IMG/VR virus record: IMGVR_UViG_3300044974_001280
Coordinates: 166,446-230,445 of that record
Strand: one strand, 5' to 3'
Length of the DNA: 64,000 nucleotides
Numbering within the stretch: position 1 is the stretch's first letter; every line of letters begins with the position of its first letter. A program made the position numbers and the translations under genes. Below the pieces are notes generated by a model. It had not been told where the DNA came from and did no database searches. It saw only the letters and a list, made by a program, of their open reading frames with translations. Shown in pieces: positions 1 to 51,529 of the stretch.

Positions 1-2347
1 GTGCAATTGACGGATGAGGAGTTATTCTTCGGACCGGTTCTGCATCTGGATCAAAATCCTCATCCTCATCTTCATCCTCACTGGGTGTAGGTTTAGGAGT
101 AGGCTTAGGCTGTGGTTTAGGCGTAGGTTTAGGCAGTGGTTTAGGCAGTGGTTTAGGCAAAGGAGCTGGTTTTCCCTTTTCCTCTTCTTTCTCCCTTTCT
201 GTTTCCGCCTCGTCTAATCTATCGCTAAATTCTGAAAAACTATTGATTCTTCTAGGACTTGTAGATTCGAACAAAGAAAAACTTTTGTGGATTTTTCTGA
301 GTCTAGATTCAGATAACTCTGAAATTTTCTTTCCGTTAATGACTAACTCATCTGCCAAGGAATCGTAATCAATTTTGAGGTTGGATCCTTCCTCAATCTC
401 TTCCTCGATTATAAAATTGGCTAGAGGGTCCTTGATATATTTCTCCACTGCTCTTCTAAGGGGTCTAGCCCCATATTCAGGGTCAAATCCGTGTTTAAGT
501 AACAACTTGTAAACCGAAGTTCCCCAAGTCAGATTAATGTCTTGGGTATTTTTAATCCTATCTGCCACCTTCTCGAGCTCTTTTTCTGCAATCTTTTTTA
601 TTGATTCTTGGTCTATTGACTGAAAAATAACAATATCATCTATTCTATTAATAAATTCGGGCGAAAACTCTTTTTTGATCGCTGCATCGACTCTTGCTTT
701 GATTTCCTCAGGTGATTCTGCTCCAGTCTGTTTTGTTTCATCTTCTGGTTCATCTTTAACCAAAAAACCAATCGCTTTTCTGGGTTCCTTTGATTTAACC
801 TTTTTAGATCCTGTTTTTGATCCCACATTAGAAGTCATGATAATAACACAGTTTGTAAAGTCAACCGTTCTCCCTTGCCCGTCCGTCATCCTTCCATCTT
901 CTAGCACCCCTAGCAGGGATTGTATAACTTGAGGGTTTGCTTTTTCGATCTCATCTAGCAAAATTACCGAATAAGGGTTTCTTCTGACTTGCTCTGTTAG
1001 TTTGCCTCCTTCCGAATAACCTACATAACCGGGAGGTGATCCAAACAATTTAGATCCTGTATGAGCCTCCGAATATTCATTCATATCAATCCTAATCAAT
1101 TTAGATTCCCTAGATCCAAAAAGCTCCTCAGCCAATTTTTTCACCAAATAGGTTTTACCTGTCCCAGTAGGGCCCACGAATAAAAATACCCCTTCAGGTC
1201 TATTAGGGTCTTTAAGACCCGACCTGTTTCTTTTAATTGTTCTAACAACGGTCTCTACCGCCTCGTCTTGACCGATAACTTTTGATTTCAGTCTGCTTGA
1301 CATTCCTTTTAGGATTGCCTTACTGCCCTTTTTCATCGTTTCAACAGGAATCCCTGTTTTATCTGCCACTAGTTTTTCCACCATTTCTTTAGTGACGGTA
1401 ATTTTAGGTCCCATTTGACCTTTCGCAGCCATTTTTTCAAGCCGACTCTCTATCTTTTCTTTTTCATCTGATAGATCTGCAGCAGCATCATAGTCACCTT
1501 CTGCCGTCTTTTGCCTGATCCGGTCTAGGAGTTCTAAATTTTTCTTTTCTAGATTCGCAACCTCCGCATCCGGGGCATTTTTAATGCGAATTCGTGCACC
1601 GGATTCGTCCATCAAGTCGATAGCTTTATCTGGCAAAAATCGGTCTTTAATATACTGCTTAGATAGTTTATAAAAGGATTCTAAGGCTTCTGGTGAATAA
1701 TTAACATGATGCCAATCCCCATATTTTTCTTGGATTTCTCTAAGTATTTCCATGCATTCCTCGTAGGTAGGCTCTTCAACTTTGATCGGTTGAAATCTTC
1801 TTTCCATGGCTCCGTCTTTCTCAATAGTTTGACCATATTCACTATAAGTGGAACCACCGATCATATGAAGTTTGGCTTTAGCCAAAAAGGGTTTGAGTTC
1901 ATCGTAACTTGCTTTAGGTAGAGAATGGAGTTCGTCCACAAAAATAATCAAGTTATCTTCCTCAATTTCACGGGCCAAAAGGGGTAAATAACCTCCATTA
2001 ACTATTTTTTTAAATGCCCAGGTCAAATCTATTAACTTTTTCCCCTTTAAAAAACCGGGACATTTATCGCTTGCCATTAAAAGAGCAAGCTTATCCACAA
2101 TAGCGGTTTTTCCAACGCCCGGCTCTCCAACCAAAACTGGATTATCCTTGGTTTTCCTGGCCAGAATGCGAAGCAACTGTTCCAATTCCTTATCCCTTCC
2201 AATTACTTCATTTATCTCTCCCTCCTTCGCTGCTTTGGTCATATCCTCACCGTATGCTTGCCAAAGCTTTTCATCATCTGGGACTTTTAGTTCTTCCTCA
2301 GATTCGAATAATCTTAATTTTTTGTAATTCTTGGATATTCTTTTCAT
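1..2347 (-). CDS. clpC: ClpC-type AAA+ unfoldase lacking the Clp N-domain, with a long C-terminal extension (partial; open at the window edge)
   Basis: Manual translation from ATG 2347: GEPGVGKT, IIFVDELH, MERRFQ, RFLPDKAIDLMDE, UVR-like GDYDAAADL, GPTGTGKT, GSPPGYVGY, LLDEIEKA, AIGF loop, FSPEFINRID, YGARPLRR; then a PKP repeat with no stop before position 1. Confidence 0.93.
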   Translation of the reverse strand, partial: MKRISKNYKKLRLFESEEELKVPDDEKLWQAYGEDMTKAAKEGEINEVIGRDKELEQLLRILARKTKDNPVLVGEPGVGKTAIVDKLALLMASDKCPGFLKGKKLIDLTWAFKKIVNGGYLPLLAREIEEDNLIIFVDELHSLPKASYDELKPFLAKAKLHMIGGSTYSEYGQTIEKDGAMERRFQPIKVEEPTYEECMEILREIQEKYGDWHHVNYSPEALESFYKLSKQYIKDRFLPDKAIDLMDESGARIRIKNAPDAEVANLEKKNLELLDRIRQKTAEGDYDAAADLSDEKEKIESRLEKMAAKGQMGPKITVTKEMVEKLVADKTGIPVETMKKGSKAILKGMSSRLKSKVIGQDEAVETVVRTIKRNRSGLKDPNRPEGVFLFVGPTGTGKTYLVKKLAEELFGSRESKLIRIDMNEYSEAHTGSKLFGSPPGYVGYSEGGKLTEQVRRNPYSVILLDEIEKANPQVIQSLLGVLEDGRMTDGQGRTVDFTNCVIIMTSNVGSKTGSKKVKSKEPRKAIGFLVKDEPEDETKQTGAESPEEIKARVDAAIKKEFSPEFINRIDDIVIFQSIDQESIKKIAEKELEKVADRIKNTQDINLTWGTSVYKLLLKHGFDPEYGARPLRRAVEKYIKDPLANFIIEEEIEEGSNLKIDYDSLADELVINGKKISELSESRLRKIHKSFSLFESTSPRRINSFSEFSDRLDEAETEREKEEEKGKPAPLPKPLPKPLPKPTPKPQPKPTPKPTPSEDEDEDEDFDPDAEPVRRITPHPSIA
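80..170 (-). repeat. PKP(L/T/Q) coding repeat (Pro/Lys hinge) in the ClpC extension
   Basis: Repeated ggtttagg units translate on the minus strand as PAPLPKPLPKPLPKPTPKPQPKPTPKPTPS, followed by EDEDEDED. Confidence 0.85.
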
Positions 2348-2954: not shown

Positions 2955-3401
2955 AAGGCGTAGTTCTGCTTCAAAAAAAATTAAAAATTATGGCAATACT
3001 TTATTTTCTTTTAGGTGCGCTTACCGTGGTGGTCTTGGTCACCGTGGCGGGTGTGTTTAAGATGAATTCGGATTTAGACCGAAAAATCAGAACCAAAATC
3101 TCCGACCACATCGAATCGGTCATGAAAGAGATTGAAATTACAAGGAACAATTTACACTCCGATGATTCTTACATCCACAATCGGATCGATGAAGTTCTCG
3201 ACGAAATCAATAAACGAGAAGAAGTCGGAATCAGATCGGGAAGAGAACAATTTGAATCTCTACAAAAGCAGTTGGATTCCAGATGCGATAAGCTCTGGGC
3301 TCAGGTGAATGCAAATTACGAGTTGAGCCAAATGAGGTTCAACGATATTTCAAACAAAAAAAATTCCCAGACAGAGGGATAAAATCGCAGAACTACGCCT
3401 T
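2955..3401. repeat. Perfect 15-bp inverted repeat bracketing ORF 2990-3382
   Basis: AAGGCGTAGTTCTGC (2955-2969) and GCAGAACTACGCCTT (3387-3401). Confidence 0.9.
2990..3382 (+). CDS. Membrane-anchored coiled-coil hypothetical protein
   Basis: N-terminal hydrophobic helix followed by a charged helical region. Confidence 0.75.
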   Translation: MAILYFLLGALTVVVLVTVAGVFKMNSDLDRKIRTKISDHIESVMKEIEITRNNLHSDDSYIHNRIDEVLDEINKREEVGIRSGREQFESLQKQLDSRCDKLWAQVNANYELSQMRFNDISNKKNSQTEG

Positions 3402-11376: not shown

Positions 11377-12537
11377 ATGAAAAATATTCAATTATTCAAA
11401 CCTAAGTTCAGAACATCAGAAATCTGGGAACATATGCAAGAGTGTATGGAAATAGGATGGACAGGTTTAGGTTTTAAAACTCAGCAGATTGAAGAAGAAT
11501 GGAAAAAATACACCGGATTTAAGCATGCGCATTTTCTAAATTCGAACACCTCTGGTTTGCATCTTGCCTTAAAAATTTTAAAAGACGCCAATAAATGGAA
11601 AGAAGGAGACGAGATTATCACGTCCCCCTTAACTTTTGTGTCTTCAAATCACGCAATAATGTACGAAAGACTGAGACCAATCTTTGCAGACGTAGATGAA
11701 TTTCTATGTCTGGATCCAAAATCAGTAGAATCAAAAATCACCAAAAAAACCAAAGCTGTTTTATTTGTGGGAATTGGGGGTAATGCCGGGAGGTTCGATG
11801 AAATAGTAAATTTTTGCCAACGCAAAGGCCTTAAAATTATTTTAGATGCCGCACATATGGCTGGAACCTGGATAAAAAACAAAACAGAGGTTGGTGTTGG
11901 TTACTCGAAAGATCATGTTGGTTTAGATGCTGATGTTTCTATTTTTAGTTTTCAGGCGGTCAAAAATCTTCCGACCGCAGATTCGGGAATGATCTGTTTC
12001 AAGAATGAAGATTATGACGTATTAGCCAGAAAATTATCTTGGCTTGGAATTTCTAAAGACACTTACCAAAGATCACACGACAAAGGAAGTTATAAATGGG
12101 AATATGATCTCGTTGATGTTGGTTTCAAATATCATGGTAATTCTATGATGGCTTCGATGGCTTTAGTTGGTTTGAAATATCTTGAAGAGGATAACACCAG
12201 AAGAAGAGAAATCTGCCAAATGTATGAAAAGTCATTTCAATCTGCAGGCATCCAGTCAGTTAAAGTTTCTCCGTACACAGAACTTTCTTCTAGGCATTTG
12301 TATCAAATTGTTGTGGAAGAAAGAAACAAAACTATGGAATTTTTAAATATTCGTGGGATATATCCAGGAGTTCATTATCGTGATAATACCCATTATGATA
12401 TGTACAAATCACAATTTGGGTTGAATCCGAATTCATTGAACCTGAGCGAGAAAATTATTAGTTTACCTTTACATTTATTTTTAACCGATGATGATATTGA
12501 ATTTGTGATTCAAAACGTTATCGAATCACAAAAATAA
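11377..12537 (+). CDS. DegT/DnrJ/EryC1/StrS PLP-dependent sugar aminotransferase
   Basis: NSNTSGLHLAL, SPLTFVS, LDAAH, FSFQAVKNL, ISLPLH. Confidence 0.95.
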   Translation: MKNIQLFKPKFRTSEIWEHMQECMEIGWTGLGFKTQQIEEEWKKYTGFKHAHFLNSNTSGLHLALKILKDANKWKEGDEIITSPLTFVSSNHAIMYERLRPIFADVDEFLCLDPKSVESKITKKTKAVLFVGIGGNAGRFDEIVNFCQRKGLKIILDAAHMAGTWIKNKTEVGVGYSKDHVGLDADVSIFSFQAVKNLPTADSGMICFKNEDYDVLARKLSWLGISKDTYQRSHDKGSYKWEYDLVDVGFKYHGNSMMASMALVGLKYLEEDNTRRREICQMYEKSFQSAGIQSVKVSPYTELSSRHLYQIVVEERNKTMEFLNIRGIYPGVHYRDNTHYDMYKSQFGLNPNSLNLSEKIISLPLHLFLTDDDIEFVIQNVIESQK

Positions 12538-17468: not shown

Positions 17469-18521
17469 ATGAAATTAAAATTGGAGTATGTTTGGTTAGA
17501 TGGATATCAACCCGAACCAAATTTGAGATCAAAAGTAAAGATTTTCGATTATACCCCGTCAAATCTGAACACTCTTTCGCCCCAACACGCAAAACCTAGA
17601 CCAGAAGAACTTCCAGAATGGTCTTTTGATGGAAGTTCCACCCGGCAGGCTGAAGGTAATTTCTCAGATTTGATTCTAAAACCAGTGAGGGTTTATGCAG
17701 ATCCTCTCAGAATGGGCTTTTGCTATCTCGTAATGTGTGAGGTTCTAAATCCAGACCGCACCCCACATTCTTCCAATACTAGAGCCTTGATCGGAAAGGA
17801 TTCTCATGCTCTTTGGTTTGGGTTTGAGCAAGAGTATGTGCTCAGGTGGTTCAATAAAAATAGTAATCGGCCGGTAGGATTTGAAAATTTCAACCCACCC
17901 GAGTCTCAGGGCAAGTATTATTGTTCAGTCGGTCATCCTTATTCCGCTGGCAGAAATATTTCAGAGGAACATTTGGATGCCTGTCTTTCTTGTGGCATTC
18001 AGATCACAGGCACCAATGCCGAAGTGATGCTCGGTCAGTGGGAATATCAGGTTTTTGGCCAGGGAGAACAGACGGCCGCAGATGATCTTTGGATATCTAG
18101 ATTTTTGCTCATGAGAATTGCAGAAAATTACCAGATCAAAGTTGACTTTCACCCCAAGCCCATGGGAGCAGAGGAAGATTGGAACGGATCAGGAATGCAC
18201 ACCAATTTTTCAAATAATAGAATGAGAGAAACAGGAGGGGAAGAATTTTTTAACAGCATTTGTCAAGTGCTGGAAAAAACCCACGATGTTGCTATTTCCC
18301 TCTATGGATCGGACAATCATCTGAGACTTACCGGCAAGCACGAAACCCAAAGCATTTCGAAATTCAGTTGGGGTGTAAGTGATAGAGGAGCATCAATCAG
18401 AATACCCATTTCTACCTCTGATAAGTGGTTGGGTTATCTTGAAGACAGGAGACCAGGATCAAATGCGGATCCTTATAAAATCACCAAATATCTCTCCAAC
18501 TCTCTCGAGGAATTAGAATAA
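17469..18521 (+). CDS. glnA: Glutamine synthetase type II
   Basis: LEYVWLDG, WSFDGSST, WFGFEQEY, NAEVMLGQWEYQ, DWNGSGMHTNFS, DRGASIRIP, YLEDRRP. Confidence 0.97.
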   Translation: MKLKLEYVWLDGYQPEPNLRSKVKIFDYTPSNLNTLSPQHAKPRPEELPEWSFDGSSTRQAEGNFSDLILKPVRVYADPLRMGFCYLVMCEVLNPDRTPHSSNTRALIGKDSHALWFGFEQEYVLRWFNKNSNRPVGFENFNPPESQGKYYCSVGHPYSAGRNISEEHLDACLSCGIQITGTNAEVMLGQWEYQVFGQGEQTAADDLWISRFLLMRIAENYQIKVDFHPKPMGAEEDWNGSGMHTNFSNNRMRETGGEEFFNSICQVLEKTHDVAISLYGSDNHLRLTGKHETQSISKFSWGVSDRGASIRIPISTSDKWLGYLEDRRPGSNADPYKITKYLSNSLEELE

Positions 18522-25240: not shown

Positions 25241-26317
25241 ATGAGAAACGTACTAGAAGATTATAAGGAAAGGGGCCTGCTCCACTCCCAGTCCCATCCT
25301 CGCTTTCCGCTGACAATTTGGAACTACAGCGAAAAGGTTCAATACGATGGATTATGGGACGATGTGACCCTTATGTGTAGAGGTCTTATTACCGATGATG
25401 TTACCGGCGGGATCCTTGTTAAACCCTTTCCAAAGTTTTTCAACTACGAAGAAATTGTGAACAAAGGACAAATTCCAACCCAAGGAGACTGTGTGTATGT
25501 GCAGGAAAAGGCGGATGGCTCTTTAGGCATACTGTTTTACTACGAGGGTGAATGGATTATGGCTACCCGGGGTTCTTTTACCTCAGACCAGGCAATAAAG
25601 GGATTAGAGATGGTTCAATCCAAATACAAGTTGGATAGTTGGATAAAAGAATACGCGTACTTGGTTGAGATCATCTACCCGGAAAATCGTATCGTTGTAA
25701 ATTACGGGGAAGAAAAAGTCATATTTTTATCTGCGGTCCCCAATAATTTTTACAAACAAACCAACGAAGAAGAATTACATTGGTCTATGGCCTGTGATGT
25801 CTTTAAGTTCAACGGTGTCTCTGATAAAGACATCACCCAAACAAAGCAGCATTTTAACTTTTCCGATCAGTTATACCGTAGTTTGAAGGCACAGAACGAT
25901 GTTAACAAGGAGGGTTTCGTTCTTAGATTTCAACCTGGTAACTTTCGGATGAAAATTAAATTTGAGGAGTATCTCAGGTTGCACAGAATAATGACAAATG
26001 TTACTTCCACTTCGATCTGGGAGGTCTTGTCTACCGGAGGTGACATGTCAGCCATCCTTGTCGACACCCCCGATGAGTTTTATGGAAAGGTGACAGGATA
26101 TGCCAACGAGCTGATAAGTCAATACCAGGAGGTAGAGAAGGAGTATTTGGCTATCTTCGACACCCTCAAGAGCATAAAAGATTTCAAGTGGAGAGCTAGT
26201 TTTGCCGAAGAAGCAAAAAAATACAAAAATCCTTCCCTTTTATTTAAAATGTACGATCGTAAGGAATACTCCTCATTAATTTGGAAAATAATAAAACCCC
26301 AATTTTATAAAATTTAA
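25241..26317 (+). CDS. rnlA: T4 Rnl1-family RNA ligase
   Basis: CRGL, PFPKFFN, motif I EKADGSL, ATRGSF, EIIYPENRIVV, EGFV, KIKFEEY. Confidence 0.92.
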   Translation: MRNVLEDYKERGLLHSQSHPRFPLTIWNYSEKVQYDGLWDDVTLMCRGLITDDVTGGILVKPFPKFFNYEEIVNKGQIPTQGDCVYVQEKADGSLGILFYYEGEWIMATRGSFTSDQAIKGLEMVQSKYKLDSWIKEYAYLVEIIYPENRIVVNYGEEKVIFLSAVPNNFYKQTNEEELHWSMACDVFKFNGVSDKDITQTKQHFNFSDQLYRSLKAQNDVNKEGFVLRFQPGNFRMKIKFEEYLRLHRIMTNVTSTSIWEVLSTGGDMSAILVDTPDEFYGKVTGYANELISQYQEVEKEYLAIFDTLKSIKDFKWRASFAEEAKKYKNPSLLFKMYDRKEYSSLIWKIIKPQFYKI

Positions 26318-35761: not shown

Positions 35762-35795
35762 CTAAAAATATAAAAACAATTTAAACCCAATCAAA

Positions 35796-36086
35796 ATGAA
35801 CGAAGAACAAACATTAAGAGTAGAACCTGTCGGAGAAATGCCACAGTGCTTTGAAAAGTCAACAGAGCAATGCGAAAGCAAAGAACAAGGAGAGCAACGC
35901 AGAAGGATTGAAAACCTTAAACGCTGGGAGATTGGCATTCACGCGCTAGACAGAGGATGTATCGTCAAGGTTGGATGTAAGAGTATTGCATTTACAAGCA
36001 TCGAGGCTGGATACAAAGAGATTGGTCGCTACTTGGAAAACCCACAGTTGGTAGCCACTCAACACGGCTTCGGGGAGCATTTTTAG
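35796..36086 (+). CDS. Hypothetical protein between the two tRNA-like elements
   Basis: 96 aa; LDRGCIVKVGCKSIAF. Confidence 0.7.
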   Translation: MNEEQTLRVEPVGEMPQCFEKSTEQCESKEQGEQRRRIENLKRWEIGIHALDRGCIVKVGCKSIAFTSIEAGYKEIGRYLENPQLVATQHGFGEHF

Positions 36087-36166
36087 AATATGCAGACGTT
36101 TTTACTTATAATTATAATAATAATTTTGGGCGGAATATATGAGGAGATAAAAGGCAGGTGAATTAT

Positions 36167-36298
36167 AGTCAGGTGGCGGAATGGTAGAAGCAAGTAAGCT
36201 AAAGCTGTGGGGGATGTTGCAGGAGAGACTCAAGAGACCGAAAGGTGTTATTCTCAAAGGACTCAACCCACGTACAGGTTCGAATCCTGTCCTGACTA
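36167..36298 (+). ncRNA. tRNA-like RNA with an expanded, non-canonical central region (copy 2)
   Basis: AGTCAGG-TGGCGGAATGGTAGAAGC...GTGGG..CCCAC..ACAGG-TTCGAAT-CCTGT-CCTGACT-A. Confidence 0.8.
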
Positions 36299-36328
36299 CA
36301 CAAGAATGCAAAAAATAGCTCACAAAAA

Positions 36329-36778
36329 ATGAAAAAAAGAATTTACTTAGATGATATTCGAACCCCAAACGATGAAAACTGGATAGTTGTTCGAAATTAC
36401 GAGCAGTTTGTAAAAGTTGTCACTGATATAGGATTAGAAAACATTGAGATCATTTCACTGGACCACGATCTGGGTGATACTGTCATGGAGGAATATTTCA
36501 ACAATGTTAAACCTAATTACGAGCTCAACTACTCAAACATCCTTGAAAAGACTGAGATGGACTGTGCAAAATGGTTGGTCGATTACTACCTGAATAAATA
36601 CGACACCCTCGAGGGCAGGGTAGGGAAAAAATCATCGGGCATTATTTTCCCCTTAGTTTACACCCATTCGGCCAATCCAATTGGCTCTGCTAACATCATG
36701 GGATACATCAACAATTTTTTGATGAATGAGGGACAGTCTCAATCCTGTGTTCGAGTTAACATCCCGCATAGCGTTTAG
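36329..36778 (+). CDS. Cyclic-phosphate-processing receiver-like domain protein (paralog of 31980)
   Basis: IYLDDIRTP, ISLDHDLG, HSANPIG; same length (149 aa). Confidence 0.8.
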   Translation: MKKRIYLDDIRTPNDENWIVVRNYEQFVKVVTDIGLENIEIISLDHDLGDTVMEEYFNNVKPNYELNYSNILEKTEMDCAKWLVDYYLNKYDTLEGRVGKKSSGIIFPLVYTHSANPIGSANIMGYINNFLMNEGQSQSCVRVNIPHSV

Positions 36779-36853
36779 AAAGAAAGGATCTGAAAGATTA
36801 TTCGGAACTTTTCTCCTTTCAAATCGTTTAGAAGAATAAAAAAAAATTGTCTT

Positions 36854-37048
36854 ATGAAAAAATGGTTTATCACTCCTCTAAAATCTTTATTTTCCCTCTA
36901 TTTAATTATTGGATTTATCAGATGGGATCTGATGATTTCAAATTGGAGTAACGACGACAGATTTGGACTGGTGCTTATTTCTCTTTTTGTGTGGATTTTG
37001 GCTTCTGCTCCTTCAGGAAGTGATTCTTCCGTTTCAACCGAGTCTTAA
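36854..37048 (+). CDS. Small membrane protein
   Basis: Two hydrophobic segments. Confidence 0.55.
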   Translation: MKKWFITPLKSLFSLYLIIGFIRWDLMISNWSNDDRFGLVLISLFVWILASAPSGSDSSVSTES

Positions 37049-37061
37049 TTGATTACATAAT

Positions 37062-38132
37062 ATGGAACAAACCAGAAAATTAGCTTCCATCAGATTGGTC
37101 AAGGAGATCAAGTCCATCAAAGGAGCAGACGCCATCGAATTGGCTGTTGTTGATGGGTGGCAGGTGGTAACCAAGAAAGGAGAGTTTAAACCTGGAGATA
37201 CCTGTGTTTATTTTGAGATTGATTCTTTTCTTCCGGTCCGGGATGAATTTGAGTTTCTCCGAAAATCATCTTTCAAGAAAATGGGAGATGTCGAGGGATT
37301 TAGACTCAAGACCATCCGTTTGAAAGGAGAATTATCCCAGGGATTGCTCATGCCCCTGAATGTGCTTCCCGTTAGGGGAAATGTATATCTTGGCATGGAT
37401 GTAACCGAAATTCTTGGGGTGATTAAATACGAACCACCCATTCCCGCCGAACTGGCTGGCAAAGTAAAAGGCTACTTTCCTTCTTTTCTCCGCCGAACCG
37501 ATGAGGAAAGGGTCCAAAATTTGTCTAGAGAATACGAAGAATGGAAGATCACCAGTAAACACCAGTTCTATGCAACCGAAAAGTTGGACGGCAGTTCCGC
37601 ATCATTTTATGTCAAAGACGGTGAATTTGGGGTTTGCTCTAGAAATCTCGAGTTGGCAGAACCAGGTGAATTTGTGTCAGGAACGGAACTGTGCGATGAT
37701 GGGATCGAACGGCCTAAGCGGGAAAACACTTTCTGGAAAGTGGCCCGTGAAATGGACATCAAGAAGAAGCTACTGGATACTGGTCTTAACCTTTGCATTC
37801 AGGGTGAATTGATCGGGGAAGGAATTCAGAAGAATCCTTACAAGCTCAAAGGTCATACCGTTCGTTTCTACAATGCTTTTGACATTGATAAACAGGAAAG
37901 ATTCAACCTCAGATCTTTTATCTCCCTTATGGAAGACTTAGGATTTGAGACCGTACCGATTCTCGGGACTGAGTTTCTTCTACCAGACACCATCGAAGAA
38001 CTCTTACAGCAGACTGAAGGGAAATCTGTTCTCAACCCCAATGCCGAGAGGGAAGGATTGGTCATTCGCAGCATGGACACAACTATTTCTTTCAAGGTCA
38101 TCAGCAACAGATTTTTACTTAAAAACGAATAG
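37062..38132 (+). CDS. RNA ligase, DRB0094/Rnl5 family
   Basis: RKLASI..I..I.GADAIE, YFEIDS, TDEERVQN, TEKLDGSS, QGELIG, REGLV, SFKVISN. Confidence 0.93.
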   Translation: MEQTRKLASIRLVKEIKSIKGADAIELAVVDGWQVVTKKGEFKPGDTCVYFEIDSFLPVRDEFEFLRKSSFKKMGDVEGFRLKTIRLKGELSQGLLMPLNVLPVRGNVYLGMDVTEILGVIKYEPPIPAELAGKVKGYFPSFLRRTDEERVQNLSREYEEWKITSKHQFYATEKLDGSSASFYVKDGEFGVCSRNLELAEPGEFVSGTELCDDGIERPKRENTFWKVAREMDIKKKLLDTGLNLCIQGELIGEGIQKNPYKLKGHTVRFYNAFDIDKQERFNLRSFISLMEDLGFETVPILGTEFLLPDTIEELLQQTEGKSVLNPNAEREGLVIRSMDTTISFKVISNRFLLKNE

Positions 38133-38135
38133 CTA

Positions 38136-38776
38136 GTGCAAGTCCATATCAATTTAGAAGAGCAGAAATTCTGGAATGATCCTGCAATTTGGGAAAATAA
38201 AAACGATCTTAAATACTGGTCAACTAATTTTTCTTCCCCTGAGCAGCTTTGGACTGATCTAATTTATCCTCTTTATGTTCCCCATCTGGGAAATAGAAAT
38301 TTAGAAATAGCGCCGGAGGTGGTAGAATCACAGAATTTTTCTTGAATCACTGTCCTTCCCTGAGTTTGGTTGAATACAACTCTGTTCCTCTTAAATTTTG
38401 TTTAGATAGATTTGGAGATAGAATCCACGGTTACCACATGAACGATGGAAAATCTTTGACCTGCTTCCCAAGTTCATCCTTCGATGCAATTGTTTCCTTC
38501 GATTCTTTTGTTCATATTCACTGGGATATTATTCGAGATTATCTGCCGGAAATGCATCGAGTTTTAAATATAGGGGGAAAGGCAACTTTGCATCACGCCT
38601 GGTTTGGAGGAGGTGAAGATCTGTCCTTTAAAAACAAGGGTGGCAGAGCAAATCTAGATCATGAAGAACTTAACAAAGAACTTCATCGACTTGGTTTTAA
38701 GATCGTTCAGCAGGTTCAGTGCAGTCCATCTCCACTTACAACAGATCTGGTTACCACATTTCAGAAAATAAATTAA
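38136..38776 (+). pseudogene. Class I SAM methyltransferase split by a 1-nt frameshift in motif I
   Basis: Adding one base near 38314 gives LEIAPGGGRITEFFLNHC, continuing into SFDSFVH..MHRVLNIGG. Confidence 0.75.
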
Positions 38777-45185: not shown

Positions 45186-45421
45186 GGGTTGATTCGGAAA
45201 GTGCATTGATAAAATTCATCAATCAATTAAAGTCGGCTGGAATTGATATTCCGGAAAATTTAACATTTGAATTTGATAGCCAAGAGTTACAAATTTTTTT
45301 CAACGAATTAGCTAATCATTATTTACAACCACCATTTGACGGTGTGAATATATTTAGTCCCGATAATAACATAACGGAATTTATTTATTTCGGGCATAAA
45401 ATGAAATTAAAACAACAATGA
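45182..45421 (+). CDS. Hypothetical protein
   Basis: ATGA overlap. Confidence 0.6.
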   Translation: MRVDSESALIKFINQLKSAGIDIPENLTFEFDSQELQIFFNELANHYLQPPFDGVNIFSPDNNITEFIYFGHKMKLKQQ

Positions 45422-45651
45422 ACAACACCAAACAAAGTAGTATTTTATGGTTACAACAGGCATTAGAGACCATATTAACACACCAGCAAATCATGCAAAC
45501 AATTGGGATATTTGTACAGTCCCATGAGATGCACAAAGAGGAACACGCTGAAACTTGGAACAGCGCTATTGATGCAGTTCAAAAAGAAAAATGGGAATCC
45601 TACGAGCAATATTACAACGAAACTTTTAATTGTATAGCAAATGAAATTTGA
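45418..45651 (+). CDS. Hypothetical protein, KQSS..W / NETFN family
   Basis: Shares both ends with 47198. Confidence 0.65.
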   Translation: MNNTKQSSILWLQQALETILTHQQIMQTIGIFVQSHEMHKEEHAETWNSAIDAVQKEKWESYEQYYNETFNCIANEI

Positions 45652-45805
45652 ATTAATGCAGTATAGATGGTATCGTAAATGGAAAGGTGGGACTTATTAT
45701 CTTATTTACAATTGGGTTACTTTACCATTTTGGTGTGATAAAATGATTACATCCTGTGGTGGAAGAGCAATTAAAATAGAAAAATTTAACACAAAATTAA
45801 TATAG
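45641..45805 (+). CDS. Hypothetical protein (54 aa, not in the ORF track)
   Basis: MKFELMQYRWYRKWKGG...EKFNTKLI. Confidence 0.55.
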   Translation: MKFELMQYRWYRKWKGGTYYLIYNWVTLPFWCDKMITSCGGRAIKIEKFNTKLI

Positions 45806-45856: not shown

Positions 45857-46495
45857 ATGAGAGTTATGTATTATCAAATTAAAGAAACCCTAACTAAAGA
45901 AGAAAATTTGGAATTGTCTAAAGCTTATGAAGATAAAGCTAAGGAATATCTAAATCAATTCAACGAACTATTGAAGAACGCTAATAAAGAATTTCCGGGC
46001 CGTACCTTTGGTTTAAGTAAAGCTAAGTTGGAAAAGTTGAAAACTCCAAATGAGGTTTATGACCGTCTGCAATCAGCGGCTCGTTCCTACTACAACACCA
46101 AATCCACTTACGAAATGCGTGAGAGAATGGTGAAAGAAAAGGAAGAGAAAGAGAAACAAGCAGAGCTCCTAAAACAACGAGAAGCTGAAAAATCTAATTT
46201 GGTCAATGAAGCTATCGCCTTTTGTTTGGTCAATGGACGAACCTTTGGTGATGGTCTTTCGGTAGAAACTGCAATCTCAATCGCCAACGATATTGCATTC
46301 CAAAAAGAAGTTGAGAAACGTAAAGTTGAAATCGGCGATGGTTACATTGGCTTTTCAGGTCAGAACTGTGAAGATGAATGTGATGGTTGGAATCCACAAT
46401 ACCACCGGTGCCAATGTGGCAATCGTAGAGTAAGTTGGACTGATGGTTATTATTCAGACTTTCGAAATATGGAAATCTACGCTGAAGCTTACTAA
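45857..46495 (+). CDS. Coiled-coil protein with a C-terminal Cys cluster
   Basis: NCEDECDGW....RCQCGNRRV. Confidence 0.75.
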   Translation: MRVMYYQIKETLTKEENLELSKAYEDKAKEYLNQFNELLKNANKEFPGRTFGLSKAKLEKLKTPNEVYDRLQSAARSYYNTKSTYEMRERMVKEKEEKEKQAELLKQREAEKSNLVNEAIAFCLVNGRTFGDGLSVETAISIANDIAFQKEVEKRKVEIGDGYIGFSGQNCEDECDGWNPQYHRCQCGNRRVSWTDGYYSDFRNMEIYAEAY

Positions 46496-46514
46496 ATTTT
46501 AACACCAAATAGAA

Positions 46515-46706
46515 ATGACACAAGAACAAAAAGAGTGGATTGATTCTGCTAACTATGAACAACTTCTTAGCACATATAGATTTGCTTCAGCTGGAGACCC
46601 TATGTTTATGGGAGAATGTGGAAAATACTATCTCGAAGTGATGCGTGAAAAGAAGCATAAACACCCCAATCCCAGCGAAGTTAGCAAACTAATAGGATGG
46701 GGATAA
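46515..46706 (+). CDS. Hypothetical protein
   Basis: Between two junction motifs. Confidence 0.7.
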   Translation: MTQEQKEWIDSANYEQLLSTYRFASAGDPMFMGECGKYYLEVMREKKHKHPNPSEVSKLIGWG

Positions 46707-46731
46707 ATCAAACCTTTAACACCAAATAAAC

Positions 46732-46962
46732 ATGAAAGAATATCTTATTACTCAAGAACAAATAGAAAAACTTGAACACTTCAAGAAAATGTTTGAATTC
46801 AATGCCCAATTAGTTCTAGACTTATGTAGTGGTGAAAGGGACGATATTGTATATGGGTTTGAACTTGGACGAATGTATTCACATCTAAGACAATGTTTTA
46901 TTGATATGATGAAACTTGAGTCTGAAATCAGAAATCAACCATTTAACACCAAAGAGAAATGA
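46732..46962 (+). CDS. Hypothetical protein
   Basis: Between two junction motifs; ends FNTKEK. Confidence 0.7.
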   Translation: MKEYLITQEQIEKLEHFKKMFEFNAQLVLDLCSGERDDIVYGFELGRMYSHLRQCFIDMMKLESEIRNQPFNTKEK

Positions 46963-47201
46963 CACCTAAAGAAAAATCAGAAGAACTTTACTACAAATAT
47001 TATCAGCTGGTCGCAGATGGACCATATCCCGAAGATAATGCTAAAAAATGTTCATTAATTGCAATTGATGAGATGATGGAGGTATATGCTTCAGCACTTC
47101 ACTCTATGGGTATTGCAAAAGATATTGCCGAATTAACACTAAGCCCATATCTTATGCAAGTAAAGCACGAAATTGAAAATCTTAAAATTGACAGTAAATG
47201 A
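46959..47201 (+). CDS. Hypothetical protein (MTPKEK family)
   Basis: AKKCSLIAIDE..VKHEI. Confidence 0.7.
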   Translation: MTPKEKSEELYYKYYQLVADGPYPEDNAKKCSLIAIDEMMEVYASALHSMGIAKDIAELTLSPYLMQVKHEIENLKIDSK

Positions 47202-47482
47202 AACAAAGTAGTATAGAGTGGTATGAACGCCAAGTCTGGGACCTGCTAATTCGATTTGAAAACAAGGAAATAACACTTGGCCAATATGGTGTTACCCGTG
47301 TTGACTTATTTAATCAAGCAAAAGAGATGCATAATAATGAGATGAATGTTAAAATCCAAAAAGCAATTGACAAATTTGAAGAAGCAAAAACCAATTCATC
47401 ATCTTTTAGAGACATAATCTACTTGGATGGTGTCTTAGCAGTTTTAGACACAATAAAAAACGAAACCTTTAACACCAAATAA
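47198..47482 (+). CDS. Hypothetical protein (MKQSS..W / NETFNTK family)
   Basis: ATGA overlap. Confidence 0.7.
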   Translation: MKQSSIEWYERQVWDLLIRFENKEITLGQYGVTRVDLFNQAKEMHNNEMNVKIQKAIDKFEEAKTNSSSFRDIIYLDGVLAVLDTIKNETFNTK

Positions 47483-47484
47483 AA

Positions 47485-47712
47485 ATGAAAATACCAACAG
47501 CAGAAGAAACATACACTAAAGTAACAGGTTGTATTATCAATCATAAAGATGTTAAAACAGCAATGATTGAATTTGCCAAACTTCATGTTGAAGCCGCTTT
47601 AAAAGCTTCTCTTGAAAGTATACCCTGTTTAGGTTCTAGTACTGATATTGCAACTTATGATGAAGTTGAAGAGGCCGTTTTAAACGCTTATCCATTAACA
47701 AATATAAAATGA
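47485..47712 (+). CDS. Hypothetical protein
   Basis: AMIEFAKLHVEAALK..AYPLTNIK. Confidence 0.7.
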   Translation: MKIPTAEETYTKVTGCIINHKDVKTAMIEFAKLHVEAALKASLESIPCLGSSTDIATYDEVEEAVLNAYPLTNIK

Positions 47713-48074
47713 ACACGCCAGTAAGTTTTGAGATAGCAAAGTTGCTAAAAGAAAAGGGATATAAATTAGATTTTGGCGATAATCAAAAATTTTATTTCCC
47801 AGACACAAGAGAATTGACTGAAAATCATAGAGGTAATAATTATCCAGCACCAACCATTGTAGAAGTAGTGATGTGGTTGTATGAGAAGCATGGGATTTGG
47901 ATTAATGGAGGATTGTATTCACATTTAGGTAATGTTTCAAAATTTCAATTTACAATCCAAAGTCAAAAATCCAGATCAACAAATTCAATAGTACAACTCA
48001 ATATCAATCCATTTAATTCACCAGCAGAAGCATACGAAGCAGCTATTGAATACACTTTAAAAAACTTGTTATGA
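47709..48074 (+). CDS. MNTPVSFE-family paralog 1
   Basis: Conserved N, middle (APTI.EVVMWLYEKHGIW) and C (EAYEAAIEYTL) blocks. Confidence 0.8.
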   Translation: MNTPVSFEIAKLLKEKGYKLDFGDNQKFYFPDTRELTENHRGNNYPAPTIVEVVMWLYEKHGIWINGGLYSHLGNVSKFQFTIQSQKSRSTNSIVQLNINPFNSPAEAYEAAIEYTLKNLL

Positions 48075-48658
48075 ACACATTAAAAAAAGAATTTGTCCCC
48101 TACGAAGAAGCATTAGCACTTAAAGAACTTGGGTTTGATGAACCTTGTTTTGGTAGTTATGATATGGAAACATTAAAATTATGGATTGGGTATTTGAATG
48201 ATGGAGAACAATTCAATAGAGAATATTATTACCCCGCACCAACATTCTCACAAGCATTTAGGTGGATTAGAGAGAAGTATAAAATAAATTCTCATGTCGG
48301 ATTTAAAGATGACGAAGACAAAGAGTTTGCATTCTATTATTACCAAATAAATTGGACAAAAGGTTTTGGTTTCCAAAGTCACGAAGAAGCAGAACTTGCT
48401 TGTCTTAGGAAGTTAATTGAAATTGTAAAAGAGAAACAAATATTAACGATAGAAGTAATCATACCCTCCGAACCATTTTATCAAAAATTTGAGCATGAGT
48501 TCAAAGTACTTCCTTCAATTTCCCTTAAAGAACGTATTTTGGGTGTTTTAGAGAACCAATCTATCGAAAGGAATGAATTTGATTATAAAATAATTGAGGA
48601 AAGAGATTGGGATGGATTAACAGAAAATTTGATAAGTTGTTTCAAACAATTTGGATGA
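48071..48658 (+). CDS. Distant relative of the MNTPVSFE family with a C-terminal extension
   Basis: FVPYEEALALKELGFDEPC, APTFSQAFRW, EEAELACL. Confidence 0.75.
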   Translation: MNTLKKEFVPYEEALALKELGFDEPCFGSYDMETLKLWIGYLNDGEQFNREYYYPAPTFSQAFRWIREKYKINSHVGFKDDEDKEFAFYYYQINWTKGFGFQSHEEAELACLRKLIEIVKEKQILTIEVIIPSEPFYQKFEHEFKVLPSISLKERILGVLENQSIERNEFDYKIIEERDWDGLTENLISCFKQFG

Positions 48659-50110: not shown

Positions 50111-50465
50111 GATGTTTTTAACTGCCGCTGAAAAATGCGAGGTGTCAATGATAGACGCAAAACACATCATGCAATACATTGACGAGTATGTAACCCCTAT
50201 TGAATTGCCCACTATGAGCAATAACGAAACACACCCAGACGATTTTATTCATGGCAAATTAACCAAGCGCGAGTACTTTGCTTCTATTATGCCGGTGGAT
50301 GATTATACCTATGACACGGTTAGGCCGTTAATGGATTCAGATATTCCGCGTTCTCCTGATTTAGAAAGAATGAAATGGTGGATGCTTGTAGAGGCAAAAA
50401 TTAAAGTAATGAAAGCGGATGCACTAATTAAAGCACTAACCAATGAACACGCCAGTAAGTTTTGA
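50091..50465 (+). CDS. Chimeric hypothetical protein (MKLYT..PIELP + LTKREYFA..ADALI modules)
   Basis: N-terminal module shared with 44922. Confidence 0.7.
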   Translation: MKLYTKEMFLTAAEKCEVSMIDAKHIMQYIDEYVTPIELPTMSNNETHPDDFIHGKLTKREYFASIMPVDDYTYDTVRPLMDSDIPRSPDLERMKWWMLVEAKIKVMKADALIKALTNEHASKF

Positions 50466-50829
50466 GATAGCAAAGTTGCTAAAAGAGAAAGGGTTTGATA
50501 TACCATGTTGGAGTTATTATTCATCTTTAAATCTTTATACTTTTGAACTTGGAGATTGGAATAATCATACTATTGGAGATACATCTATGCATAAAAGAAA
50601 TGCTGGATATTACTCAGCACCAACCATTGCAGAAGTTGTGATGTGGTTGTATGAGAAACATGGGATTTGGACTGTAGTGAATGTGAACATTATGGGGTCT
50701 TGGTATTTTGAACATTTTGATTTGAAAAAGAAAAGGAATGCTGAATTTAAACCTACAGATACACACTATAATTCACCAACAGAAGCACACGAAGCGGCTA
50801 TTGAATACACGCTAAATAATTTAATATGA
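50443..50829 (+). CDS. MNTPVSFE-family paralog 2
   Basis: First 44 nt identical to 47709. Confidence 0.8.
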   Translation: MNTPVSFEIAKLLKEKGFDIPCWSYYSSLNLYTFELGDWNNHTIGDTSMHKRNAGYYSAPTIAEVVMWLYEKHGIWTVVNVNIMGSWYFEHFDLKKKRNAEFKPTDTHYNSPTEAHEAAIEYTLNNLI

Positions 50830-51260
50830 ACACTGAAGTAAATTTTGAAATTGCAAAACTCCTAAAAGAAAAAGGATTTTCTTGGGAATGTCGTCACTTT
50901 TATCGCAAAAGTAAGTACGATAAAGAATTTTATTTAACAACAGGTACAGAATATGAATCCGATAAAGATTGTATTTGGGATTGGAACTTGAATGGTGGTA
51001 AATCAGGTATGCTTTTAAAAAAAATTCCATACCCGAATGATGATAATGCAATCTACTACTCAGCACCAACCATTGCAGAAGTTGTGATGTGGTTGTATGA
51101 GAAACATGGGATTTGGATTTATGCACATAGGATAGACCAAAAAGAATTTTATTGGTCTATTGATACTGATAAAAAAGAGTTTACATCAGGAGAAAATTTC
51201 AAAACACCAACAGAAGCATACGAAGCAGCTATTGAGTACACGCTAAATAATTTAATATGA
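50826..51260 (+). CDS. MNTPVSFE-family paralog 3
   Basis: 51057-51117 identical to 50611-50671. Confidence 0.8.
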   Translation: MNTEVNFEIAKLLKEKGFSWECRHFYRKSKYDKEFYLTTGTEYESDKDCIWDWNLNGGKSGMLLKKIPYPNDDNAIYYSAPTIAEVVMWLYEKHGIWIYAHRIDQKEFYWSIDTDKKEFTSGENFKTPTEAYEAAIEYTLNNLI

Positions 51261-51529
51261 ACACACCAGTAAAATTTGAAATTGCTGAAATTCTGTTTAA
51301 AAAACATGGAGTATTATTGTCAACTATATCAGACGTAGTAATGTGGTTGTATGAGAAGCATGGGATTTGGACTGTAGTGAATGTGAACATTATGGGGTCT
51401 TGGTATTTTGAGCATTTTAATTTGAAAGAGAAGAGGAATGCTGAATTTAAACCTACAGACACACACTATGATTCACCAACAGAAGCATATGAAGCAGCTA
51501 TTGAATATACTTTAAAAAACTTGTTATGA
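51257..51529 (+). CDS. MNTPVSFE-family paralog 4
   Basis: Second variable region nearly identical to paralog 2; C-terminus matches paralog 1. Confidence 0.8.
   Translation: MNTPVKFEIAEILFKKHGVLLSTISDVVMWLYEKHGIWTVVNVNIMGSWYFEHFNLKEKRNAEFKPTDTHYDSPTEAYEAAIEYTLKNLL

Follow-up and report, generated by a model that had tools for sequence, protein, structure and literature searches.

A sequence of about 26 bases that ends one small gene and starts the next is shared by unrelated phages, probably of Bacteroidota, and small accessory genes are gained, lost and reshuffled at it, so that it looks like a universal adaptor for the exchange of genes between phages. We analysed a 64,000-nt stretch (hereafter the window) corresponding to positions 166,446 to 230,445 of the IMG/VR record IMGVR_UViG_3300044974_001280 (here G000), a T4-like phage genome with matches to Gp23 and Gp20. 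A preliminary description of the window had noticed four exact copies of TTTAACACCAAA-N5-ATG with invariant spacing in front of unrelated small genes, either intergenic or encoding the FNTK C-terminus of the upstream gene, together with a degenerate copy. This observation was confirmed. The pattern TTTAACACCAAANNNNNATG occurs exactly four times in the window, always on the + strand, and it was found in none of 100 dinucleotide-preserving shuffles (0 expected). The 12-mer has no other exact copy in the whole 230,445-bp record, and a 29-nt weight matrix built from other phages found only these four sites and none in 5 shuffles. We also found a further, probable decayed copy upstream of the degenerate one. 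The four genes downstream of the exact copies show no BLASTP similarity to one another. The array lies in a long run of small + strand ORFs, and its features are collected in Table 1.

Table 1. Copies of the junction motif and neighbouring genes in the window.
Position	Strand	Feature	Description
45418..45651	+	Small gene	c0 family (MK..Q...W ... YYNETFN), the signature cassette of these arrays (HMM E = 1.3e-6)
45625..45643	+	Probable decayed copy	At the 3' end of the c0-family gene 45418-45651 (...YYNETFN...); the ATG of ORF 45641-45805 lies one base closer than in the consensus
45785..45796	+	Degenerate copy (TTTAACACAAAA)	One mismatch; encodes FNTKLI* at the end of ORF 45641-45805; the start codon position reads ATA and no gene follows directly
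45857..46495	+	212-aa gene	Upstream of copy 1; conserved in related jumbo phages that lack the array
46498..46517	+	Motif copy 1 (TTTAACACCAAA-TAGAA-ATG)	Intergenic, 2 nt after the stop of the 212-aa gene (46493-46495, out of frame with the motif); ATG starts ORF 46515-46706; 30.6 bits
46515..46706	+	Cassette gene, 63 aa	No known family
46715..46734	+	Motif copy 2 (TAAAC spacer)	Intergenic; upstream stop at 46704-46706, out of frame with the motif; ATG starts ORF 46732-46962; 32.9 bits
46732..46962	+	Cassette gene, 76 aa	No known family; ends in FNTKEK
46942..46961	+	Motif copy 3 (consensus GAGAA spacer)	Translated as FNTKEK* at the end of ORF 46732-46962; ATGA gives a stop/start overlap with ORF 46959-47201; 37.0 bits
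46959..47201	+	Cassette gene, 80 aa	phrog_21441 (unknown function); homologues in contigs L042 and L097 are also preceded by the motif, those in L231 and L232 are not
47198..47482	+	Cassette gene, 94 aa	c0 family (HMM E = 5.8e-14); ends in ETFNTK
47468..47487	+	Motif copy 4 (TAAAA spacer, preceded by GAAACC)	Translated as FNTK* at the end of ORF 47198-47482; ATG starts ORF 47485-47712; 38.3 bits
47485..47712	+	Cassette gene, 75 aa	Family widespread in phage contigs; of the 80 loci kept, only 6 carry the motif at the gene start (4 from the window's own lineage, plus L305 and L306)

The four copies are diverged members of a longer element of about 26-29 nt, (G)AAACC-TTTAACACCAAAGAGA(A/G)-ATG-A(AA), which occurs in more than 100 IMG/VR contigs and sits in one tight same-strand array of 2-7 small genes per genome; in each large record there are 4-7 copies within 0.6-1.6 kb. 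The element is found both in T4-like jumbo phages and in unrelated phages of about 50-100 kb. Among the records examined, G000, G005 and G006:C1 are T4-like (Gp23 and/or Gp20 matches), whereas G001 and G003 are not. No isolate in INPHARED carries the junction or the c0 protein, a search with the RNA ligase gave only distant hits and no clue to the host, and exact-string searches of the literature library retrieved only unrelated primer matches and no paper containing the sequence in a phage context. The assignment to Bacteroidota hosts is inferred and rests on MAG binning (4 of 8 hits) and on the composition of the start regions. As for the function of the cassettes, Pfam and PHROGs gave nothing beyond two families of unknown function.

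In order to assess the tie of the element to start codons, we searched for the exact 16-mer without including any ATG in the query. Of 87 exact copies, 86 have ATG at +17 and the other at +16, none has GTG or TTG, and the second codon is mostly AAA. The conservation is at the nucleotide level. Upstream ORFs end at the TGA overlapping the ATG (60), at the internal TAA (25) or before the motif (about 25), and some copies directly abut a tRNA or a hairpin. With protein-level ascertainment, 85 of 107 TFNTK occurrences (79%) use exactly ACC TTT AAC ACC AAA, against about 1% expected from codon usage.

To investigate whether genes are exchanged at the element, we compared the flanks of motif junctions between contigs. 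About 115 unrelated protein clusters flank the motif, and only one flank is homologous in 73 of 77 informative pairs (both flanks 4, upstream only 27, downstream only 46). Among tight junctions, both flanks were homologous in 0 of 25 motif pairs against 38 of 157 plain pairs; plain junctions in these loci are also highly mosaic (24% with both flanks homologous), so the excess at motif junctions is only moderate. BLAST alignment ends are 4.8-fold enriched at the motif. Furthermore, two pairs of closely related contigs differ by cassettes bounded by motif copies: L023 and L018, with flanks 99.9% and 98.9% identical and 172 nt extra between two copies, and L048 and L051, which differ by two cassettes, although the direction of each indel cannot be told. 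One cassette has different neighbours in contigs L106, L126 and L127. These events are seen in the arrays of other phages and not in the window's own lineage, where two near-identical relatives (L138 and L139) are identical across the array and more distant ones (L140-L145) share only the 212-aa gene and lack both the array and the motif. The array is thus lineage-specific. Taken together, the comparative data support the first alternative of the preliminary description, namely a shared linker that lets unrelated genes be inserted or excised as cassettes while supplying a translation start, the effect on translation being inferred from sequence; its second alternative, a binding site for a translational regulator, is not excluded.

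The explanation that we favour, with moderate confidence, is that the element does two jobs. On mRNA it would be a ready-made translation junction without a Shine-Dalgarno (SD) sequence, which stops the upstream reading frame in two of three frames (TAA inside TTTAAC, and TGA overlapping the ATG) and presents an unstructured, A-rich leader with an ATG at a fixed place. This suits hosts of the Bacteroidota type, which do not use Shine-Dalgarno pairing. In the motif phages and in G000, SD-like tetramers are at or below background and A peaks at -13 to -11, matching the initiation region described for Flavobacterium johnsoniae (PMC6847099), although within the motif position -3 is G rather than the favoured A and -12 is C. 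The duplex of the motif with a Flavobacteriales 16S, taken from a MAG that carries the motif, was no better than for shuffles (-13.9 against -14.2 +/- 2.2 kcal/mol; -3.8 against -4.0 for the 3' tail). The 80-nt folds of the window copies have z-scores of -0.72 to +0.78, and the possible CTTT/AAAG hairpin shows no covariation among the four copies. A programmed +1 frameshift, suggested by the resemblance of CUU-UAA-C to the prfB site CUU-UGA-C, would add only six residues and lacks an SD stimulator. The motif is confined to a few genes per genome and homologues of the same gene families elsewhere do without it, so that it is not needed for translation in general and a specific regulatory role remains possible.

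On DNA, the same sequence flanks every cassette in direct orientation, and we propose that it is a portable patch of homology at which general homologous recombination inserts, deletes and swaps small accessory genes, both within an array and between co-infecting phages. The machinery would be phage-encoded, an ERF annealase plus a PDDEXK exonuclease in the ~50-kb phages and UvsX-type proteins in the T4-likes. In accordance with this, an ERF annealase and a PDDEXK exonuclease lie just upstream of the G001 array, and the exonuclease family is present in 27 of 87 motif loci; on the other hand, about 26 bp is short for efficient homologous recombination. Because crossovers would fall inside the junction, both neighbouring genes would stay intact and expressed, and any cassette carrying the linker would become mobile. 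That this mobility, rather than purifying selection on expression, keeps the sequence uniform is an inference.

Among the other explanations, the least unlikely is that the motif is primarily a translational operator, bound on mRNA by a sequence-specific factor from phage or host that co-regulates a small set of early accessory genes, as for T4 RegA targets or as proposed for the start-associated sequences of mycobacteriophages (PMC3203893), with recombination as an incidental by-product of repeated sequence. The strict conservation, which includes C and T positions that an unstructured A-rich leader would not need, the fixed distance to ATG and the restriction to a few neighbouring genes per genome would fit this possibility. 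The c0 family, found in 27 of 87 motif loci, in 0 of 40 control loci and twice in the window, could encode such a factor. However, the element is identical in T4-like and unrelated phages, so any factor must come from the host or be carried in the array, and c0 is absent from many arrays, for example in the parts examined of G006, L127 and L018. The AlphaFold model of c0 (pLDDT 85.7) is a plain three-helix protein with no PDB match with E below 2 and no nucleic-acid-binding match, and regulation alone does not predict that one-flank homology is the rule. A more speculative and improbable version, which the data nevertheless leave open, is that a dedicated factor carried in the arrays, for which the predicted three-helix c0 protein (MKTPMQE...YYNETFNTKEK) is the best candidate, binds the site on RNA or DNA to control or catalyse cassette exchange, which would make the arrays an integrase-free analogue of an integron moving accessory genes between T4-like jumbo phages and small ERF-encoding phages of Bacteroidota.

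A transcription or RNA-processing signal, either a promoter giving nearly leaderless mRNAs or an endoribonuclease site cutting the polycistronic early transcript before each gene, appears very unlikely. The length and invariance of the element (about 23 nt upstream plus GAGA) may loosely recall single-subunit RNA polymerase promoters of the T7/T3/SP6 type ending ...AAA-GAGA, and first copies in arrays follow a tRNA or a terminator-like hairpin. Nevertheless, more than half of the copies lie inside upstream coding sequence, the spacing to ATG is invariant, the copies are not distributed genome-wide as a promoter class would be, and T4-like and non-T4-like phages would not share a private polymerase. 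No sigma-70-like hexamers, no Bacteroidota -7 box (TAnnTTTG) and no terminator lie at the window copies, and F. johnsoniae mRNAs are mostly leadered (PMC6847099). Site-specific recombination in an integron-like system is also very unlikely: arrays of directly repeated short sites separating promoterless small ORFs, with precise presence or absence of cassettes, would be compatible with it, but no tyrosine or serine recombinase (PF00589, PF00239) was found in G000, G001, G003 or G005, records that are 42-85% complete, the motif has no inverted-repeat arms beyond CTTT/AAAG and no fold, and the neighbours, an ERF annealase and an exonuclease, are general recombination proteins. The idea that the conserved feature is a C-terminal peptide (ETFNTKEK) acting as a tag or docking motif finds some support in the 60 upstream ORFs that read it in frame and in the longer YYNETFNTKEK tail conserved in the c0 family. 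It is already largely refuted by the codon and frame data, since synonymous codons are almost never used, about 50 copies are untranslated or read only up to the internal TAA, copies follow tRNA genes, and window copies 1 and 2 are intergenic.

Whether phage mosaicism is guided by conserved linker sequences or arises from random illegitimate joins is a long-running argument, in which clear examples of linkers are rare. Here, one sequence sits at the stop/start boundary of unrelated small genes in at least two unrelated phage lineages, with enrichment of breakpoints and cassette gain or loss bounded by it. It also bears on how genes are started in hosts that ignore Shine-Dalgarno sequences, as a natural and portable Bacteroidota-type start signal that could possibly be used as an expression adaptor. 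The cassettes are small early-region genes of unknown function, where anti-defence and host-takeover genes tend to sit, and the motif gives a simple handle for harvesting such genes from metagenomes.

The arrays resemble integron attC cassette arrays in being made of promoterless small ORFs separated by repeated sites in direct orientation, with gain and loss of whole cassettes, but no integrase was found in the incomplete records searched, there is no attC-type folded inverted repeat, and the site overlaps coding sequence and the start codon. Short conserved sequences at gene boundaries have also been proposed to guide homologous exchange of modules in lambdoid phages (the modular theory of Susskind and Botstein, and HK97/HK620-type comparisons); those examples seem to be few, weakly conserved and disputed, whereas here one invariant sequence is present in more than 100 contigs. 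The start-associated sequences (SAS/ESAS) of Cluster K mycobacteriophages (Pope et al. 2011, PMC3203893) are likewise asymmetric conserved oligomers 3-7 bp upstream of start codons of non-structural genes, in one orientation, with a strong preference for ATG and in association with unrelated gene families; in our case the 12-mer core ends 5 nt before the ATG and all copies in a record are on one strand. SAS, whose function is unknown and proposed to be translational, with no cassette exchange described in the sections consulted, contains a Shine-Dalgarno core (AGGAG), is 13 bp long and is scattered over half the genome. The present motif contains no GGAG or AGGA, is about twice as long, includes the start codon and two stops, is confined to one short array and crosses phage lineages. 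Finally, the PeSLs (promoter-early stem-loops) of T4-type phages (Arbiol et al. 2010, PMC2839356; Comeau et al. 2014, PMC4122927) are short conserved regulatory repeats that separate small non-essential ORFs in the variable regions of T4-like genomes and that bound indels and replacements between relatives, with homologous recombination between repeats as the proposed mechanism, and the window's phage is itself T4-like. PeSLs, however, are intergenic promoter-plus-terminator modules, whereas this element has neither, sits on the stop and start codons, is often translated, is about 26 nt long and is shared with non-T4 phages.

A search of the window with the pattern TTTAACACCAAA-N5-ATG returned exactly four occurrences, and no match was obtained in 100 dinucleotide-preserving shuffles, which confirms the four exact copies with invariant spacing reported in the preliminary description. 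The 12-mer has no other exact copy in the 230,445-bp virus record to which the window belongs (G000), and a 29-nt weight matrix built from copies in other phages recovered only these four sites (30.6-38.3 bits; none in shuffled genomes). The degenerate copy that had also been noted was found to have lost its ATG, and a further, probable decayed copy was identified. The four downstream genes (63, 76, 80 and 75 aa) are not similar to one another. The coordinates of these and of the other features discussed here are collected in the following table.

Coordinates of the junction motif copies and of associated features in the window, in the rest of G000 and in other loci (L numbers)
Sequence	Position	Strand	Feature
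Window	46498	+	Motif copy 1, intergenic
Window	46715	+	Motif copy 2, intergenic
Window	46942	+	Motif copy 3, translated as FNTKEK*, with an ATGA stop/start overlap
Window	47468	+	Motif copy 4, translated as FNTK*
Window	45785-45796		Degenerate copy, encodes FNTKLI*
Window	45625-45643		Probable decayed copy
Window	47709-48074, 48071-48658, 50443-50829, 50826-51260, 51257-51529		Five paralogous small genes (phrog_12005-like), in two tandem groups
Window	2-2347 (-), 11377-12537, 17469-18521, 25241-26317, 37062-38132		ClpB-like double AAA+ protein, DegT-family aminotransferase, glutamine-synthetase-like protein and two RNA ligases (one T4 Rnl1-like, one PHA02142/Rnl-type)
G000:C1, outside the window	35768-37009 and 37393-38640		Two adjacent, nearly full-length matches to the T4 portal family (Gp20; E = 1e-63 and 9e-62)
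L018	2529-2604, motif at 2605		tRNA gene followed immediately by the first motif copy of the array
L023	9018-9093	-	tRNA gene followed immediately by the first motif copy of the array
L226 (G006:C1)	near 11,850	-	tRNA gene followed immediately by the first motif copy of the array
L048; L051	480-555; first 40 nt of the reverse complement		Long-range stem (GACCCC...GGGGTC followed by a T run) immediately preceding the first motif copy of the array
L049	about 3130-3160		GGCGCA-N14 (containing ATAAAA)-GGCGCA-AACC, just upstream of a motif copy
L049	3600-4035		Gene MNYIKIAKWF..., continuing through a degenerate in-frame motif copy
L101	about 3232-3357	-	Gene MNYIKIAKWF..., ending at ...HYIETFNTKEK

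The motif is part of something much larger. In a partial scan of IMG/VR, about two thirds of those carrying it have a much longer shared sequence, (G)AAACC-TTTAACACCAAAGAGA(A/G)-ATG-A(AA), and many have two to four copies 100-700 bp apart on one strand. The copies in the window are diverged versions, three of them having T in place of G just after the 12-mer. When the 16-mer was searched without any ATG in the query, 86 of 87 exact copies had ATG at offset +17 and the other had it at +16, whereas none had GTG or TTG; the tie to start codons is therefore real and not a product of the search. The downstream ORFs are small, with a median of 54 aa.

In order to establish at which level the element is conserved, we examined the upstream ORFs of at least 30 aa, using simple ORF calls. 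Of these, 60 end at the TGA that overlaps the ATG, so that the motif is read as FNTKEK*, 25 end at the TAA inside TTTAAC and about 25 end before the motif. Some copies directly abut a tRNA gene or a hairpin. The tRNA arrangement occurs in two unrelated phages, namely L018, with its near-identical relative L023, and the T4-like G006 (locus L226), where the discriminator A of the tRNA plus CC supplies the ACC that normally precedes TTTAAC; the stem in L048 and L051 could be a terminator or a small structured RNA. To avoid ascertainment by DNA, we searched with a degenerate back-translation of the peptide [YF][NED][EKL]TFNTK. Of 107 distinct TFNTK occurrences, 85 use exactly ACC TTT AAC ACC AAA, against about 1% expected from the codon usage of long ORFs in the same loci, while the gene bodies in front are only 30-60% identical in protein. 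Conservation is thus at the nucleotide level, and a C-terminal peptide function is therefore very unlikely to explain the motif. A conserved non-coding element, which may be a protein-binding or promoter cassette, sits just upstream of a motif copy in L049, L068, L114, L026 and L118; in L026 and L118 a second motif copy, without an ATG, lies directly before it.

In every large record the copies form one tight array: seven copies within 1.6 kb in G001 (51 kb), four copies across the record ends in G003 (101 kb), four copies within 0.6 kb in G005 (212 kb), three copies (≤1 mismatch) within 0.7 kb in G006:C1 (248 kb) and four copies within 1 kb in G000 (230 kb). G000 matches both the T4 major capsid protein (Gp23) and the portal (Gp20), for which the two adjacent matches suggest tandem paralogues in this jumbo phage; G006:C1 matches both plus a T4-type terminase, and G005 matches the portal, the only one of these families searched there. 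We therefore call these three T4-like, whereas G001 and G003 do not match the T4 portal family. In G001 the array lies just downstream of an ERF-family annealase (PF04404, E = 3.6e-31) and a PDDEXK exonuclease, and this exonuclease family is the most frequent large neighbour of arrays, being present in 27 of 87 loci. No tyrosine or serine recombinase was found in G000, G001, G003 or G005, although these records are incomplete. The phage of the window also encodes the AAA+ protein, the aminotransferase, the glutamine-synthetase-like protein and the RNA ligases listed in the table.

A Bacteroidota host is likely but not proven. Four of the eight hits in prokaryote genome bins are in Flavobacteriaceae, Flavobacteriales or Saprospiraceae MAGs, and one of these, a 248-kb contig, is itself a T4-like phage. 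As indirect evidence, genes of the motif phages and of G000 lack Shine-Dalgarno (SD) sequences: SD-like tetramers occur in 9% and 6% of start regions, against backgrounds of 9.6% and 13.7%, and both sets show an adenine peak at -13 to -11, which is the signature of initiation regions in Flavobacterium johnsoniae (PMC6847099).

To test whether the junctions behave as cassette boundaries, we compared their flanks between contigs, bearing in mind that all relatives are metagenomic contigs, many of them fragments, and that the flank tests use ungapped identity over 60 nt. Proteins flanking the motif fall into 115 clusters. Among pairs of motif sites from different contigs with at least one homologous flank, both flanks were homologous in 4, only the upstream flank in 27 and only the downstream flank in 46. 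In a control using tight gene junctions called in the same loci, plain junctions had both flanks homologous in 38 of 157 informative pairs and motif junctions in 0 of 25; for junctions between two small genes the figures were 11 of 29 and 0 of 19. Furthermore, internal ends of BLAST alignments fall within 25 nt of a motif 4.8 times more often than random positions do (198 against 41 +/- 6).

These results were accompanied by individual cases of cassette gain or loss. L023 and L018 have flanks that are 99.9% and 98.9% identical, and L023 carries 172 extra bases, a degraded cassette of the small-gene family c0, lying between two motif copies just after a tRNA-Arg gene, where L018 has a single copy. 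L048 carries two extra cassettes relative to L051, each bounded by motif copies, directly after the shared hairpin. The cassette M(R/K)PLDNVQMIEVK...NDHCL occurs in L106 (the T4-like G005), L126, L127 and L012, and in the three loci whose flanks were examined (L106, L126, L127) the motif lies on both sides and the neighbours differ on each side. In L049 and L029 the gene MNYIKIAKWF... reads through a degenerate in-frame copy (...HYIETQNAKEE...) to a second ETFNTKEK or ETFKTKEK, which, compared with L101, looks like a deletion or fusion at an internal motif copy. Homologues of two window cassettes occur elsewhere both with and without the motif; the motif therefore belongs to the arrays, not to the gene families. 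In the window's own lineage no exchange is visible: L138 and L139 carry the same array, and relatives that share the 212-aa gene at 44-78% identity have other neighbours and no motif, which is consistent with the array having been acquired in this lineage. The five paralogous genes just downstream of the array in the window (37-56% identical to one another) have ATGA-type overlaps but no junction motif.

Taken together, we propose, with moderate confidence, that the element is a standardised junction. It closes the upstream frame in two of three frames and offers an unstructured, A-rich, Shine-Dalgarno-less leader with an ATG, usually followed by AAA, so that whatever lies downstream can be translated in a polycistronic early transcript; in the absence of transcript, ribosome or read-level data, this translational effect is inferred. 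The same ~26 bp flanks each cassette in direct orientation and thus provides homology for phage recombination systems, that is, ERF plus exonuclease next to the arrays of the ~50-kb phages and a RecA/UvsX-like gene in G005. Crossovers inside it would keep both neighbours intact, and cassettes with the linker would spread, in turn homogenising the linker, although the relative weight of selection against gene conversion in keeping the sequence uniform is likewise an inference.

The main alternative, a translational operator for a specific factor, is possible but considered unlikely. A promoter or processing site is more doubtful still: no sigma-70-like promoter, terminator or Bacteroidota -7 box was found at the copies in the window, and a phage-specific RNA polymerase or sigma factor is unlikely to read the same site in both T4-like and unrelated phages. 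The window copies show no RNA structure and the motif has no special complementarity to 16S rRNA. Site-specific recombination and a peptide tag are regarded as remote possibilities.

The motif string is absent from the searched literature in any phage context. The closest functional analogues are the PeSLs of T4-type phages (PMC2839356, PMC4122927), the start-associated sequences (SAS) of Cluster K mycobacteriophages (PMC3203893) and, probably, the disputed linker sequences of lambdoid phages. The element is not a member of the PeSL class, because it has no promoter and no stem-loop, nor of the SAS class, because it has no Shine-Dalgarno core and its copies are clustered, not scattered. It is not an integron, because no integrase was found in the four incomplete records searched and it has no attC fold. 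We suggest that it works like a PeSL but at the level of translation rather than transcription, and it crosses phage lineages.
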